Source: Chlorokybus atmophyticus
Lineage: Eukaryota; Plantae; Mesostigma and Chlorokybus algae
Assembly (NCBI GenBank): GCA_009103225.1
Contig: RHPI01001737.1
Span: 570,286 to 634,285 of the forward strand
Length of the DNA stretch: 64,000 bases
Direction: 5' to 3'
Part shown: piece by piece, positions 47,947 through 53,736 of the stretch
Layout: each line of letters starts with the position of its first letter
How positions within the stretch are numbered: position 1 is the first letter of the stretch
The notes under the pieces: model-generated
Databases searched by the model: none
What the model was told of the DNA's origin: nothing
What the model saw: the letters and a program-made list of their open reading frames with translations, nothing else
Made by a program: the position numbers and the translations under genes

Positions 47947-50900
47947 ATGGCGCCCGTAACGTGCTGCTTGGCGCCTGCAGCGACGACAGGCGTCGGCAGA
48001 ACGCTGCCTGCGGTGAGCGGCTGGCTGCATGGGTGGCCGGCGTGAGGCAACGCTGAGTGCACTCAGTGTGTGCCTTAAGGCTGTGCCTGTGTGTGAACAT
48101 TAACGAATCTCCCTGTTTGTGCTTGCAGCAGAGTAAGGAAGCTCGGAGGCAGCGAGGCGCAGCCGCGAAAGCCAGCTGCAGGACAAGCAGGTGGCTCTCT
48201 GGAGAAAGCACGAGCAGGAGGAGCGGTTTCCTGGCAGTTCCTCGGTCAAACTTGTCACTCGCTGGTGCACGACAACAAGCATGGCGCACTGCTACAAGCA
48301 TGGTAAGAATCAGTTATTGTCATCTCAAACCACTTTGTTTGATACTGCGCACGCATGCTGCGGATGCACTTGTTGCTTGCGCTCTTGCTGCTCGTATGCG
48401 CGGAGGGTATGGAAGAGCACTGTCTCTGTTGATCACGCCAGTGCCATAACCTGCCTCTGTACAGGTAGCTGCGGAAAGGCAGGTTCGGAGTAGCGATGGA
48501 GCATTGCGGAAGGGGATGAAGGAGCTTCGCGTGTCGGTGATAACCGACCCGCAGGTGGACGGCAACGCTCCACAGGCCGGCTTCAAGGTGGACACATGTT
48601 CTTGTTTTCAAAGCTCATGACGTTCTTTGCTGGCGGAAGTGCGACTTGGACAAACAGCCTAAACTTGACTACTTGATGTGATGCAGTTGACAATTATCGA
48701 CAGAGACGACCCGACAAAGCTCCAGATCGTGGAGCTTGAGAAGTCCGCGACACGGTGGGGAAGGAAGGGGAAGGGGAAGCAGTGGAAGAGCCAAAGCAGA
48801 GCAACGGCAGCTGCGGGCAACAGAAGAACGCGTACGGTGAACGCGGGCACTCTCACGGGGTTGCTCGCGGGATCTCTCATCGCATCGCGCACCTTCCTGG
48901 GGCGGACCACAACCTTTGGCAGCAACCTCGAGTTAGCGGACGATACCATCTCGGGACCTGGCGTCGCCACCTTCCGCATCACCGTCCCACAGGTGCGTAT
49001 GGAACGTGGTGTCCTTTTCAGAAACACAACCGTGCATACACAACTGCAGAAACAACCACAGCTTGAATGCTACATTTGTCTTTTGCCAACTATTGTTGTT
49101 GGTTAACACTACAGTCTATGACTCGACAGCTGTGCTGCTAGATAGAAGCTTGGCATGTGCAGTGCTTGCTGTGATGATGGAAAGGCAAAACTCATTGTGT
49201 ACTCACGGCATCCCTACACCTGCTTTTCAACTGCAGGACTTGAACCCGGGTGTCATTATCGTAGGGCGACCAGAGGCCTGCGCAGCGCTCCCCAATGATG
49301 CCGTGCGCAAAAGCGTCCTGGAGCAACAAGGTGCTAACCGTCAACTTATTGTGACGTAAGCTCGCGCTCTCTCTCTCTCTCTCTCTCTCTCTCTCTCTCT
49401 CTCTCTCTCTCTCTCTCTCTCTCTCTCTCTCTCTCTCTCTCTCTCTCTCTCTCTCTCTCTCTCTCTCTCTCTCTCTCTCTCTCTCTCTCTCTCTCTCTCT
49501 CTCTCTCTCTCTCTCTCTCTCTCTCTCTCTCTCTCTCTCTCTCTCTCTCTCTCTCTCTCTCTCTCTCTCTCTCTCTCTCTCTCTCTCTCTCTCTCTCTCT
49601 CTCTCTCTCTCTCTCTCTCTCTCTCTCTCTCTCTCTCTCTCTCTCTCTCTCTCTCTCTCTCTCTCTCTCTCTCTCTCTCTCTCTCTCTCTCTCTCTCTCT
49701 CTCTCTCTCTCTCTCTCTCTCTCTCTCTCTCTCTCTCTCTCTCTCTCTCTCTCTCTCTCTCTCTCTCTCTCTCTCTCTCTCTCTCTCTCTCTCTCTCTCT
49801 CTCTCTCTCTCTCTCTCTCTCTCTCTCTCTCTCTCTCTCTCTCTCTCTCTCTCTCTCTCTCTCTCTCTCTCTCTCTCTCTCTCTCTCTCTCTCTCTCTCT
49901 CTCTCTCTCTCTCTCTCTCTCTCTCTCTCTCTCTCTCTCTCTCTCTCTCTCTCTCTCTCTCTCTCTCTCTCTCTCTCTCTCTCTCTCTCTCTCTCTCTCT
50001 CTCTCTCTCTCTCTCTCTCTCTCTCTCTCTCTCTCTCTCTCTCTCTCTCTCTCTCTCTCTCTCTCTCTCTCNACCAGGGCACCAAAGCCTCCCTTGGATT
50101 GGCTCCCAACCCTCTGTCAAACATTCTTTCTGCCATTGTCGGCGCGGTCTTGAAAGTGGTGAACGACGCTCAGGTAGCATTATCAAAAAGATGGTTTCTC
50201 AAGAGCGTGATAATCCAGGACTTGTCGCCCACGCCCGCCGCCGTTTACTCCTTCCCTGTGTACTCCTGGACCTACCGCGACGAGCCGGGGGAGATCTATT
50301 TTGAATCAGAAGCAACCCTTGCAAACAAAAGCAGCCTTACCGTGCAGCAGTTTCGGCGCATCGCACTTGAGGTCATGCGGGAGGTGTACAAGTATGACGT
50401 GGTAAGATGATGTAAGGACAACATGTGCTCGTTGTCGATGACATGCTCTTCAGCCTGTGCTGATTCGACTGCCCTTCAGTATGATGATCTGAGCTCCCCA
50501 GCGACACTTAGCGACACTTCCAACCCAAAGTATAGACCCCCTCTAAAACCTTATCCAAGGTACTACCAGCTAGTAGCTGCAACTCTCTCACATGCACACG
50601 CACATGCACACACATATACGCATGCACACGCACTGCGTGTGGCACATGTGAGCGCATAAGCAACATCGCACCAACAATTGCACAGTCTGCACGCAGTGCT
50701 CACACATTTTGCAGGCATTGCCGCTTCAGACAGAGCGCATAACATGTTGACCAATGCAGGCGCTTGAGGGGAACTGCAGCAACGCTGCCATTGGACGAAG
50801 ATTTTGACTACGTCAAAAGGAAGCAGTTCCTCACCGTGGCGGTGCTGGGCGCTGTGCAGTCGGTGCTGGCGGATCCGGGTGCTGCTGTCCGCCAGCTCGC

Positions 50901-53736
50901 GTTCGGCCTGCCGCCCTGGACCAGAGTCGACCAGATGATTAATGGCCTGTACAAGTACGGAAGCAGCATCATCAACCTCTTCGGCCTGTTCAAGTTCCCC
51001 AATCCTCTCGTTATCAACAACCCCAATTGCATCAGGTCAGTGCTTGCTGAATGCATGCCCTCGTTTCATTGACTGCATTGCATCGTTGAGTATTATCCTT
51101 GCTCAAGCTTGAGCAAGGATAACTATGAGAGTTGGAGCAGCACCTAGCAGGGCCTCGAGGCCTGAAGGCCGTGCTAGGTGCTGCTCTACACTCAGCAGAA
51201 GAAACGCTGATGGTTACTGCTGTTCTTGTACTCTGTCACAACTGCAGCCACGAAACATGACTCCAGTCAATACCATGTTGTCATGCAGGTGGGAGAGCGA
51301 TTTCGAGTTTGCGAGGGAGAGAGTGGCAGGCATTCACCCCACAACCATCAAGAAGGTGAGCGAGCTTCCTACGGACCTGGGTGGCAGTGGCCAGCCGGAG
51401 GTCGTGTCGTCGCTCGAGCAGGAGCTGGCGGCCGGTAGGCTGTACACGGTGGACTACACCGGCGTGGCGGACTACCTCAAGAGCATCGATCAGCCTAACA
51501 AGGAGCCGACGCTCAGGGGAGGCAAGTACGATCCCAACCATGACGTGCTCTACGCCCCGCGCGCCTTCTTCCGTGTGGACAAGGCTACGGGCGACCTCCT
51601 CCCTGTGGCCATCCAGCTAGAGCGTGCAGGCAGGCTGTACACTCCATCTGAGGAGAGTGCGCAGCTTGGCAATCAGAATAAAGAATGGACTCCTGCTAGG
51701 ATTCCTAATACCCCTCTGGGAAGAGTGTTTGCCCTCTGGATTCAGGCATCCAACTCCGCCCAGATCTGGCTGCTCTCTCAGCCACAGTCGCCGCTCACCA
51801 AGCTGGCCCTATGGGCTTTCTACTTTGCTGATTCCATCGAAGCCAGCAGAGGAACGTAAGCATTGGTACTGCTCATGTCATCACGTGCACCCTTTAACCC
51901 TCCTTCACCATGTGTGTGAGAACTGATTGTTTCTTTCCGCAGCGATGGGGAGGTGTGGCAGAGGCGCTACTATCTGCTGGGTGAGAATTATGCAGCGTTC
52001 GGGCAGCTGCAGCTGGGCGAGTTCAGCCTGGTCAAGGATGCCCTGCTCCAGCCGCAGGAGCGAGGCCCCTTCATCGCTTTCATTCGCATGGTGGAGAAGA
52101 GGTAAGCATGCTGTTGAGGATGGATAGCGGGTGAGGTTGAGCTATGGTGGAAGGACGCGTTTGTTCACTCGCACGCCTAGGTAGAGTTCATTCTAGTTAC
52201 ATGCATGTGATTAGGATTGCAAAGGCTAAGGGTTGTATGCATGCTGCAATGGAGCATGGGCGGTGGTGGTCTCAATGCATGTTCATTGCTGACATATGCA
52301 TGCAGCTTCCCAAGCAACATGCTGCTCTTCATGTCTGATAAAGCAGCAGGGGGCACTGGAGAGAGGGAGAAAATAAAGGTATGCATGTCAAAGCAGTAGA
52401 ATGGTGGCTTTGCAACATTGACGGTGTCGCTCGAAAACGGGCAGTATTGAAAAAGTGCTGCATGTGCTGCATGACAAGGCTTCAACTAGAGGTTGCGCTC
52501 CTTGCAGGAACTAATATGGGAGAAGTTCACCTCACGTGAGGTGCTAGAGAGAACTCAAGACAAGGTGAGGCAGACGCTGCGAGTTGAATGCACACGCTAA
52601 GTGTTGTGCCCAGCACACATGCGTCTGACGTTCACGTTTGCATTGCCTCTCAGTTCCCGGGGCAGCTCATTCGAGAGCTGGCTGCCAGCGTGCAAAGAGA
52701 CAAAAAGAACTTGGCCAAGAATGTTGAGAACTTCACAATCCGATACATGCATTACGTCCTTTATGGTACGATACAGAGATAAACATAGTCGCTGTTATTG
52801 GCTGCCTTGTGTGATGGCCGTTCCCAAGCTTTGCTTAACCCCCAGGTTTCGAGGACGACCCTGAGATTATGGAATTGTGGCAAGGCTTGGCTCAAGCGTA
52901 CGCTGCAAAGAGGGTACGTACATAGCTAATTCTGACCAACGTTTCATCATTGTTGTTACACTGTAACAATGTATGCACTCTTGTCTTTTCAACAAAGCAT
53001 GCCTTGATACGCAAATTTGTGGCAGGTGTTTCCCTTGGGTCTATTCGTCAACAACCGCACAGACCCTGTTGTTAACGGGCTGAAGTCCAAGTACGAAAAC
53101 TCAGTGCTGTTCCGGGACGTGGACTATCAACGCTACGACTTGACTAAGGACCGCTTCCTCGACGCTCTCATACCCGCCATGGGTGTGGCCGCAGTCCCGG
53201 GCGCTCTTTCGTTCCTGACATTCCTGCTTACAACCATACCAGGTTCATTTAAAGTCCCCGTGGAGGACCGGAACCTGCTTAGACTCACTGCCTTGGAGTC
53301 CATCCGGCTCCACACCCCTGTCAACCCCATCGCGTACTACCTGTCTGAGGACCTGACAGTGAAGATGGGCAAGAAGAGGGTCCGCTTCCCCAAAGGCACT
53401 CCTGCGGGCATTAACGTGTGGGTGGCATCTCAGAACAAGGCGCATTTCGACCTCGCTACGGCAAGCTTCAATCCTCACAGAGAGAACCTGGAGGGGAATT
53501 TCCTGAACTTCAACTCTGTAGGGGAGCAGCACCCCCAAGGCAGGCAGTGCCCGGGCCGCAAGATCGTTGAGATGCTGGGAACAGATGTGCTCCACGCTGT
53601 GCATAGTCGCGATGATGATGGTGCGGAGAAGAGTGGTGCTGATGTCGAGAAAGAGACTGTTGTCCTCGACAGCGGTGGTGATGGGATGCCAAGCACAGGG
53701 AGTGATCAAACGCAGAAGCGCGCTTTCTTTCGTTGA
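47947..53736 (+). CDS. Putative plastid-targeted fusion protein of about 1,050 aa: PLAT plus N-terminal lipoxygenase half plus atypical (CYP74-like) cytochrome P450 (copy 1)
   Basis: About 15 GT-AG exons in consistent phase. One junction next to the (CT)n/N gap is uncertain. Transit-like MAPVTCCLAPAATT...SRRSGFLAVPRS; PLAT end WFLKSVIIQD...YSFPVYSW. Plant LOX motifs YKYDV|YDDL...RPPLKPYPR, LPLDEDF, WESDFEFARERVAGIHPTTI, LYTVDY, LYAPRAFF, LLPVAIQL. P450 motifs LESIRLHTPV (ExxR), FNPHRE, FNSVGEQHPQGRQCPGR (Cys at 53548-53550). Confidence 0.85.
49367..50071. repeat. (CT)n microsatellite of about 700 bp in an intron, ending at an N; length unreliable
   Basis: Pure CT repeat from 49367 to 50071, followed by a single n at 50072. 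Confidence 0.9.

Follow-up and report, generated by a model that had tools for sequence, protein, structure and literature searches.

The 64-kb stretch of DNA analysed here (the window) carries a gene of the nuclear genome of Chlorokybus atmophyticus, a streptophyte alga, in which part of a PLAT-lipoxygenase (LOX) sequence is joined in frame to a complete P450-like domain. On the plus strand, nine canonical GT..AG splice joints from RNA-run contigs connect ten exons (50078-50401, 50480-50559, 50760-51035, 51289-51855, 51943-52101, 52306-52378, 52508-52564, 52654-52765, 52846-52913 and 53026-53736). Translation after cuts set on these GT..AG sites yields a single frame of 808 codons, which ends with the stop codon at 53734-53736 and which starts in the final portion of a PLAT barrel, crosses the N-terminal part of a LOX catalytic domain and enters the P450-like domain. 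The spliced, phase-consistent reading frame joining LOX to P450 that an earlier note on this DNA had described is therefore borne out from 50078 onward. The 3' UTR (53737-54300, plus strand) reaches at least to 54023-54300, with RNA contig coverage of 53380-54300 (X1) and 53380-54023 (X2). The gene is transcribed, and the chimera is real and expressed.

The junction between LOX and P450 lies within a single exon, 51289-51855, whose acceptor at 51289 on the LOX side and donor at 51855 on the P450 side are both supported by RNA. No splice joint in the RNA-run contigs departs from this exon between 51289 and 51855. Since none of these contigs covers 51559-51753, the interval that holds the junction, we infer the single transcript through it. 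The one transcript proposed for 50078-53736 is accordingly backed by nine joints and by a junction exon bounded by used splice sites, but not by a contig across that interval.

Upstream of 50078, a splice-site model predicts four further exons on the plus strand (47947-48012, 48129-48302, 48465-48587 and 48687-48992), all in phase 0 with canonical GT..AG sites, which extend the full model to 1031 aa. Their predicted product opens with an Ala/Arg/Ser-rich, transit-peptide-like stretch and may include the first PLAT half. A Pfam search of these exons (47947-48992) gave no match, none of the RNA-run contigs covers them, and codon usage backs exons 3-4, but not exons 1-2. The presumed intron 4 contains (CT)352 and, directly after it, one N (49367-50072, N at 50072), probably an assembly gap fill where genuine sequence may be absent. 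Two RNA contigs match 50073-50077, directly upstream of the predicted acceptor, and extend 112 and 467 letters further; a CT repeat was ruled out for these additional letters, and the contig bases before 50078, ACCAG, do not match the last bases of predicted exon 4. Given the gap in the assembly, the 5' end, and hence targeting and the first PLAT half, rests on prediction, and a plastid location would follow from the predicted 5' exons. The transit-peptide-like start that had been proposed is, like the exons that hold it, a prediction, and the RNA contigs do not fit the exon 4-to-5 joint.

A second copy with the same junction, also claimed earlier, is confirmed. This copy occupies 64000-61732 of the minus strand, with a TAA stop at 61734-61732, is convergent with copy 1 and runs off the window. 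Copy 2 is 78-81% identical to copy 1 at the DNA level (blastn), shares its LOX/P450 junction and intron positions, and keeps a continuous frame throughout its visible part. Exons are 80-92% identical between the copies versus 56-72% for introns, and dN/dS is about 0.25 for the LOX segment and for the P450 alike. Both copies are under purifying selection.

On the opposite strand, head-to-head with the gene and 1.9 kb ahead of its predicted start, lies an isolated, degenerate exon of a LOX catalytic domain (46049-45930, minus strand). It spans the second iron-His region (THA...HP...); the exon has lost the first His, and PH has become PQ. This relic matches Pfam Lipoxygenase positions 350-389 (25.6 bits, cut-off 23.6) and positions 376-419 of a purpose-built LOX profile, aligns to residues 500-534 of soybean LOX-1, and restarts 34 profile positions beyond the end of the fusion's LOX part. 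Profile and Pfam searches found no further exon of a LOX C-terminal half within the window. The relic fits an origin in which a LOX gene was divided by rearrangement.

The lipoxygenase-derived part

In the first RNA-supported exon (50078-50401), the C-terminal PLAT half (50141-50284) is followed by the beginning of the helical LOX region, up to the donor joint at 50401; the exon corresponds to positions 91-176 of the purpose-built LOX profile. Its Pfam PLAT (PF01477) match reaches 23.4 bits (cut-off 23) and covers positions 61-108 of 117. A complete PLAT/LH2 domain forms a beta-sandwich of eight strands and takes up about 117 profile positions. Of the PLAT domain named in the earlier note, the second half was detected, and the first half would fall in the predicted exons or the gap.

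The region from PLAT to WESDFEF (50480-51035, plus strand) comprises exons 50480-50559 and 50760-51035 with RNA joints and an open frame; here the model aligns, by BLASTP, with the PLAT-LOX portions of P0002 and P0024, two fusion proteins considered below. The last LOX segment (WESDFEFA ... PVAIQLERAGRLY; 51289-51640, plus strand) covers Pfam Lipoxygenase positions 188-238 and positions 236-342 of 682 in the purpose-built profile. It corresponds to about residues 340-455 of soybean LOX-1 and ends about 40 residues short of the first iron-binding His. In soybean LOX-1, iron is bound by H499, H504, H690, N694 and I839, that is, by three His, an Asn/His and the C-terminal Ile. The iron ligands of an active LOX are absent from the fusion, where the LOX sequence stops at profile position 342 of 682 and the frame then enters the P450. 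As its sequence reads, the LOX-derived part alone would be incapable of oxygenating lipids, and the truncated helical region may fail to fold without the core.

Solved LOX structures match the LOX exon over residues 205-312 (8x8f), 353-466 (2iuj) and 340-386 (LOX-1). Its best matches among solved LOXs are bacterial-type 15-LOXs, and the description of the motifs as plant-type is not borne out. Searched as single exons, the gene clears the Pfam cut-off for PLAT as given above, but stays just below it for Lipoxygenase (PF00305; 23.3 bits, cut-off 23.6) and below it for p450 (PF00067; 17.6 bits, cut-off 22.8).

The P450-like domain and its family

Within the junction exon, a linker of 27 residues (51641-51721, plus strand) follows the LOX segment. 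Its sequence and length vary between the copies, with indels in the paralogue alignment and a dN/dS above 1 that rests on few sites. Seven exons (51722-53622, plus strand) then encode a complete, compact P450-like domain, from RVFALWIQ to about 20 residues beyond the haem Cys. RVFALWIQ aligns with residue 1 of stand-alone family proteins, and residues 1-95 of P0001 map to 51728-52102 (tblastn). The motifs PQERG, LLFMSD, LESIR, FNPHRENL and NFNSVG-x6-RQCPGR could all be located, with the ExxR as LESIR at 53293-53307, FNPHR from 53467 and the Cys of RQCPGR at 53548-53550. The domain is followed by an unconserved tail of about 35 residues plus stop (53623-53736, plus strand), which is absent from the family and from copy 2.

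The assignment to the P450s was made on account of homologues (best E 2.9e-18), matches of the family profile to solved P450s at E 1e-12, and a predicted model of one family member with a P450 fold (pLDDT 93). By these sequence and model comparisons, the domain belongs to the cytochrome P450 superfamily, with the predicted P450 fold, a proximal Cys in a Cys-pocket motif and an ExxR. More specifically, it groups with a compact, unnamed P450-like family of about 410 aa that occurs as stand-alone proteins in diatoms and bacteria. Family hallmarks are an (S)xxxQ(L/I)W(L/C)L helix at the start, an end about 20 residues after the Cys, and the motifs PQxRG, LF(L/M)SD, LExxR, FNPxRxNL and FNSVG-insert-RxCPGR (alignment A1). 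Alignment places the Chlorokybus domain as a member, collinear from residue 1 to the end, and it retains all eight invariant and 10 of the 11 near-invariant residues. These findings uphold the full-length P450 with ExxR, FNPHR and haem Cys.

The sequence does not bear out the further statement that this P450 is CYP74-like: no CYP74 appears among the best 60 of 344 family-profile matches, which are headed by CypX, P450nor and PksS, and identity to AOS is 13% in a structural alignment. Enzymes of the CYP74 clan (AOS, HPL, DES and EAS) need neither O2 nor NADPH nor a reductase to turn over fatty acid hydroperoxides; 2RCH, 3DSI and 3DAN are structures of CYP74A. Lee et al. 2008 reportedly described for CYP74 enzymes about nine inserted residues in the Cys-ligand loop, together with an I-helix that has a catalytic Asn and lacks the oxygen-activating acid-alcohol pair. 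In the compact family, the Cys-ligand loop holds a variable insert of 6-13 residues between FNSVG and RxCPGR, and the I-helix (GIAGxxG) is without Thr or acid, as is that of Chlorokybus (53173-53214). The Chlorokybus copies show no conserved Asn at the corresponding I-helix place, as located in the family alignment.

The family also meets LOX elsewhere. Single reading frames of reverse order, P450-PLAT-LOX, each on an mRNA-like or a bacterial contig, are found in Tetraselmis, in Cymbomonas and on a bacterial contig (L007/L008): Tetraselmis striata TSEL_030157 (P0002, 1130 aa), with a 97% identical close relative (P0121) on an mRNA-like contig (L012), Cymbomonas tetramitiformis KAK3275241.1 (P0013, partial), and the bacterial metagenome fusions P0024/P0110. 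The Chlorokybus P450 matches the P450 part of P0002 with 30% identity (BLASTP E 1.5e-41). Furthermore, lipase and LOX genes adjoin a stand-alone P450 member at L004, LOX adjacency being seen in one of about six stand-alone bacterial contexts. The family tree gives the Chlorokybus P450s a long, unplaced branch apart from the other fusions, so that common descent of the LOX fusions is unsupported by it. The claim of a new architecture holds in part: the pairing is not unique to Chlorokybus, but no published description of a LOX/P450 fusion turned up in full-text literature searches. The P450-PLAT-LOX fusions are known from databases only and are undescribed in the literature.

Possible origin and role of the chimera

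We lean, with some reserve, toward a chimera of PLAT, LOX N-terminal part, variable linker and compact P450 that arose by rearrangement, in which the P450 would convert hydroperoxides and the LOX part would serve as a docking module. The P450 lacks the I-helix acid-alcohol pair, its Cys loop carries an insertion, and fusion with or adjacency to LOX recurs in the family; a hydroperoxide-converting enzyme is therefore the most likely reading. Its conversion of fatty acid hydroperoxides would be AOS-, HPL- or epoxyalcohol-synthase-like, without the enzyme being a CYP74. The LOX-derived part would most likely keep the P450 at a membrane or on a LOX catalytic core. As for origin, a rearrangement, probably an inversion, may have broken a PLAT-LOX gene mid-way and joined its front to a P450 gene, so that the back half came to stand head-to-head with it on the opposite strand. 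A later inverted duplication would have taken in the entire unit, and the back half at copy 1 would since have decayed to the single relic exon. In algae, diatoms and bacteria, the unnamed compact family may act on the products of lipoxygenases.

The relic and the last LOX segment, which is strongly conserved, suit a split-LOX origin at least as well as the lipid-binding delivery module proposed in the earlier note. PLAT-LOX(N) could bind a separately encoded LOX C-terminal half non-covalently, restore an active LOX with it and pass the hydroperoxide of that LOX straight to the attached P450, as a two-gene equivalent of the chlorophyte P450-PLAT-LOX fusions. We regard this as a possible but clearly less probable alternative. 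The break separates the peripheral N-terminal part from the iron-binding core, the relic of the complementary half stands head-to-head at copy 1 and resumes 34 profile positions after the break, and one-piece relatives exist. The last 64 LOX codons, moreover, are identical at 58 positions between the paralogues, with the dN/dS of 0.25, which is hard to square with a mere tether. In contrast, the partner half at copy 1 has decayed to one degenerate exon with its His and PH altered. A wider proposal, that the rebuilt LOX carries a tethered P450 and that the compact family is an unrecognised hydroperoxide-converting class in CYP74's place, is put forward tentatively, as rather doubtful. If true, the compact family would replace CYP74 in lineages without it, such as diatoms and some green algae and bacteria. 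Diatoms are said to have lost CYP74 (PMC10864609).

Two separate products are improbable. In that case, the P450 would be made from its own internal promoter or start, and the LOX-N exons would be a transcribed relic, either a long 5' leader or a decaying pseudogene, with no role as protein. The hole in the RNA contigs falls exactly at the junction, with unequal contig depths on either side, and the single-exon Pfam scores of the LOX part are marginal. However, 26-32% of the 31-mers sampled from within the hole are present in the RNA runs, no joint leaves the junction exon, the frame is open through ten exons of copy 1 and all of the visible copy 2, and the LOX segment is conserved as described, with exons more conserved than introns. 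Both copies lack a Met close to the beginning of the P450 domain; the first lies about 95 residues in, so that separate translation would drop conserved N-terminal helices. A misjoining of LOX and P450 exons in assembly or annotation is very improbable: low-complexity fills each followed by a single N do occur ((CT)352+N at 49367-50072 and (C)398+N at 56416-56814), but the nearest N is 1.6 kb from the junction, both splice sites of the junction exon are used in RNA, and the same junction in copies about 20% diverged would make it an identical misjoin arising twice.

Comparison with other oxylipin fusions

Fusions of a haem domain to LOX sequence are known from the catalase-related AOS-LOX proteins that corals and cyanobacteria possess (Koljak et al. 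1997 Science, cited through PMC10813956; PMC3925239; PMC5617202). As in Chlorokybus, both modules share one protein, and there the haem domain converts hydroperoxides in an oxylipin pathway. The coral and cyanobacterial proteins have an N-terminal catalase-related domain with Tyr-ligated haem and a complete, active LOX, whereas the Chlorokybus haem domain is C-terminal and P450-like with a Cys ligand, and its LOX is truncated. On these grounds, and with no catalase-related sequence in the protein, identity with the catalase-type AOS-LOX was rejected.

The module order of Chlorokybus is found in the fungal dioxygenase-P450 fusions (Ppo, linoleate diol synthase and DOX-AOS; Oliw and co-workers; PMC13049297 and references in PMC10813956), with a fatty-acid-oxygenase-type N-terminus and a C-terminal P450 that is self-sufficient and acts on the hydroperoxide. 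The fungal N-terminal module is an active haem dioxygenase of the peroxidase/cyclooxygenase type, in contrast to the LOX fragment without a metal site in Chlorokybus, and the two P450 families are unrelated beyond the superfamily.

The P450-PLAT-LOX proteins unite the same compact P450 family with PLAT and LOX in one polypeptide, as Chlorokybus does. They begin with the P450 and have a complete LOX, catalytic core included, whereas in Chlorokybus the order is reversed and the LOX ends before the iron ligands. The remaining LOX is part of the polypeptide there, and at Chlorokybus copy 1 it lies on the opposite strand as a relic.

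Expression and splicing of the chimeric gene

The window consists of nuclear DNA of a eukaryote, and its introns are short and of the GT..AG type. Contigs from four RNA runs were placed on 50073-54300, and all nine exon joints found in them could be read as GT..AG. With the cuts set on these sites, the RNA joints define ten exons of copy 1, the chimeric PLAT-lipoxygenase (LOX)-P450 gene on the plus strand, at 50078-50401, 50480-50559, 50760-51035, 51289-51855, 51943-52101, 52306-52378, 52508-52564, 52654-52765, 52846-52913 and 53026-53736. Translation of the ten exons yields one frame of 808 residues with a sole stop at its end, which bears out the earlier note's claim of a spliced open reading frame joining LOX and P450 sequence. 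Most RNA contigs are at least 99% identical to copy 1. As copy 2 is diverged by about 20%, the contigs derive from copy 1 and not from its paralogue. Past the stop, RNA coverage reveals a 3' UTR that reaches 54023-54300 or further. The chimera is a real, expressed gene.

The linker between the LOX part and the P450 comprises 27 residues (51641-51721), and residue 1 of P0001, a stand-alone homologue of 407 aa, aligns at 51728 by tblastn. Together with the LOX end, these positions place the junction within exon 51289-51855. RNA joints use both the acceptor of this exon, on the LOX side, and its donor, on the P450 side. The proposal that 50078-53736 is read as one transcript thus holds for the joints on both sides of the junction exon, but coverage is interrupted at 51559-51753, where no contig from the four RNA runs could be placed. 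Between 10 and 32% of the 31-mers sampled from this stretch are present in the RNA runs (26-32% in runs X1 and X4), and these cannot stem from the placed contigs. A likely cause of the hole would be strain divergence in the fast-evolving linker. Used as a query, the junction exon gave no match in the protein collections or in the metagenome scan. In neither copy is there a Met close to where the P450 domain begins, which argues against the P450 being translated separately.

Two individual RNA contigs showed irregularities. A contig of run X2 (depth 608) omits 183 nt in frame at 53189-53373, with non-canonical CG..AA ends. The omission would delete everything from the last part of the I-helix up to and including ExxR. 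An artefact, a variant and a further paralogue are all possible explanations. A contig of run X1 carries 13 mismatches over 122 nt at 50911-51032 versus only 3 over the following 246 nt past the splice, a pattern that points to another strain, an additional paralogue or a chimeric unitig.

Four predicted 5' exons (47947-48992) are phase-consistent with canonical sites and would extend the model to 1031 aa. They are separated from the RNA-backed exons by (CT)352 and an N; no Pfam match was found in them, and codon usage backs only exons 3 and 4. At 50073-50077, 5' of the predicted acceptor, two RNA contigs match the genome and then extend by another 112 and 467 letters that cannot be a dinucleotide repeat. 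Immediately ahead of 50078 these contigs read ACCAG, which is at odds with how predicted exon 4 ends, and no donor with ACCAG ahead of GT occurs in 47000-49366. Genuine sequence, perhaps a PLAT exon, has probably dropped out at the N (50072). The transit peptide that the earlier note saw in the predicted 5' exons is therefore putative, and so is the plastid location drawn from it. The (CT)352 stretch at 49367-50072 and a (C)398 stretch at 56416-56814 are low-complexity fills with one N at the end of each, and both look like assembly gap artefacts.

A second copy and its conservation

Copy 2 occupies 64000-61732 of the minus strand and is convergent with copy 1; the two are 78-81% identical in DNA. 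The earlier observation of a second copy with the same junction was confirmed, with both the exon-intron structure and the LOX/P450 junction matching those of copy 1. Identity amounts to 80-92% in exons and 56-72% in introns, and the linkers differ by substitutions and two indels. By the Nei-Gojobori method, dN/dS is 0.25 in the shared LOX segment (64 codons) as well as in the P450, and exceeds 1 in the linker, which offers few sites. Both copies are constrained. The TAA stop of copy 2 falls 27 residues past the haem Cys, as in the wider protein family, while copy 1 reads into an extension of roughly 35 residues (53623-53736) that is not conserved. This extension is homologous to the 3' UTR of copy 2 (61621-61734), indicating that a stop was gained or lost recently.

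The truncated lipoxygenase part and a nearby relic

In searches of single exons, the domains named in the earlier note gave weak matches. PLAT was matched just above its cut-off (Pfam positions 61-108; 23.4 bits against 23), and Lipoxygenase (positions 188-238; 23.3 bits against 23.6) and p450 (positions 322-389; 17.6 bits against 22.8) remained below theirs, and the stronger evidence comes from relatives. Model residues 253-339 and 450-564 align at positions 91-176 and 236-342, respectively, of a LOX profile of 682 positions built from fusion relatives. The last LOX exon also aligns with solved LOXs, namely 8x8f (205-312), 2iuj (353-466) and soybean LOX-1 (340-386). Judged from these alignments, the LOX part of the fusion ends near the equivalent of LOX-1 residue 455, ahead of H499 and H504, the first two iron ligands. 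A LOX part that stops short of the iron ligands cannot be an active LOX.

A degenerate LOX catalytic exon of 40 residues was found on the minus strand at 46049-45930 (Pfam Lipoxygenase positions 350-389; 25.6 bits, cut-off 23.6). This relic sits 1.9 kb upstream of the predicted start of copy 1, head-to-head with the fusion gene. It covers positions 376-419 of our LOX profile, starting 34 positions beyond the end of the fusion's LOX part (342), and aligns to soybean LOX-1 500-534. Its first His position has been lost, and PH has changed to PQ. No further exon of the LOX C-terminal half, intact or otherwise, was detected in the window by tblastn, our own profile or Pfam, which rules out an intact C-terminal half there. 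The relic looks like the decayed partner half of copy 1, and is evidence for a former head-to-head LOX arrangement at this locus.

A compact P450-like family and its ties to lipoxygenase

An exhaustive HMMER search with the last exon of copy 1 retrieved 105 proteins (best E 2.9e-18; 34-36% identity). With the best match only 36% identical, the Chlorokybus protein itself is absent from the protein collections searched. The matches delimit a family of compact proteins, about 410 aa in length (alignment A1), the start of which coincides exactly with that of the Chlorokybus P450 domain. The family ends about 20 residues past the haem Cys, so that the usual C-terminal sheet region is missing. Its motifs comprise PQxRG, LF(L/M)SD, LExxR, FNPxRxNL, and FNSVG with an insert of 6-13 residues before RxCPGR; the I-helix, between LF(L/M)SD and LExxR, reads GIAGxxG and lacks the Thr/acid pair. 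Copy 1 keeps all eight invariant residues and 10 of the 11 near-invariant ones.

The family profile matches 344 solved P450 sequences (best E 1.8e-12), with CypX, P450nor and PksS on top. No CYP74 entry stands among the best 60 of these 344, and the label 'CYP74-like' proposed earlier is not established: CYP74 membership was rejected on sequence, and structure neither singles CYP74 out nor excludes it. A confident AlphaFold2 model of P0001, standing in for the Chlorokybus protein, reached a pLDDT of 93.2 and showed moderate similarity to P450s in Foldseek (TM 0.5-0.66). As the ranking is flat, this structural match amounts to a resemblance rather than membership. No specific name for the family was found in Pfam, NCBIfam or the AlphaFold DB clusters.

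Three of the matches are P450-PLAT-LOX or P450-LOX fusions with the module order opposite to that of Chlorokybus, each encoded in one open reading frame. These are Tetraselmis striata TSEL_030157 (P0002, 1130 aa), Cymbomonas KAK3275241.1 (P0013, partial), and P0024 / P0110 (1085 / 1123 aa), the latter among bacterial genes. A combined LOX and P450 architecture is therefore not confined to Chlorokybus. P0110 is a complete P450-LOX of one uninterrupted frame (contig L007, 8001-11372), neighboured by a LysR regulator, an IS110 transposase and an ABC transporter. In a word-index search with the Tetraselmis fusion, the sole match besides itself was P0121, which is 97% identical. It is a P450-PLAT-LOX of 1168 aa in one uninterrupted frame (85-3591) of L012, a 3760-nt mRNA-like contig without introns. 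Our profiles confirm that the two modules share one frame.

The stand-alone member P0009 adjoins convergent Lipase_3 and Lipoxygenase genes (contig L004, 8001-12069; ENA k141_652180, 267 kb, bacterial-type), and the group looks like a three-gene oxylipin cluster. No general gene-neighbourhood tie of the stand-alone family to LOX was found, as it is seen solely here, in one of about six contexts; the five other bacterial contexts held no LOX, and no P450 of the compact family lies near the Pyxidicoccus LOX locus. In a maximum-likelihood tree, both Chlorokybus copies sit on a long, unplaced branch and group with no other fusion clade, and the Tetraselmis/Cymbomonas fusions fall in a different clade from the bacterial fusion. 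Either LOX fusion arose more than once, or the tree carries too little signal to decide.

Diatoms, too, have stand-alone members (P0007, P0016/P0129 and P0043, from Attheya, Chaetoceros and a Bacillariaceae MAG). A 2020 review describes the mechanisms downstream of LOX in diatoms as largely unknown (PMC7401250). According to a 2024 paper, CYP74-like enzymes were lost in diatoms, and which enzyme follows LOX in them has yet to be established (PMC10864609). Because diatoms are reported to lack CYP74, the compact family, with these diatom members, is a candidate for the hydroperoxide-converting enzyme that acts after LOX.

Literature searches returned no description of the P450-LOX and P450-PLAT-LOX proteins of L007 and L012, nor does any P450 fusion feature in a 2026 review on LOXs from bacteria. 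No published description of the Chlorokybus chimera was found. The view that no LOX-P450 fusion had been described stands: full-text searches for LOX/P450 fusions returned only catalase-type AOS-LOX and fungal dioxygenase-P450 fusions.

The three settings that link LOX to the compact P450-like family, which has no name, are this streptophyte alga, a pair of chlorophytes and one contig of bacterial origin. The Chlorokybus chimera appears to be a rare case of an enzyme cut mid-way by rearrangement, with both copies kept under selection, and allows a direct test of whether a LOX can work as two polypeptides. Its architecture is best viewed as a version, rearranged and truncated, of a hitherto undescribed partnership between P450 and LOX that chlorophytes and bacteria have as well. 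Natural fusions such as coral AOS-LOX and fungal DOX-CYP have been key to the discovery of oxylipin enzymes, and the chimera is relevant to the organisation of oxylipin metabolism before the CYP74-based jasmonate synthesis of land plants.
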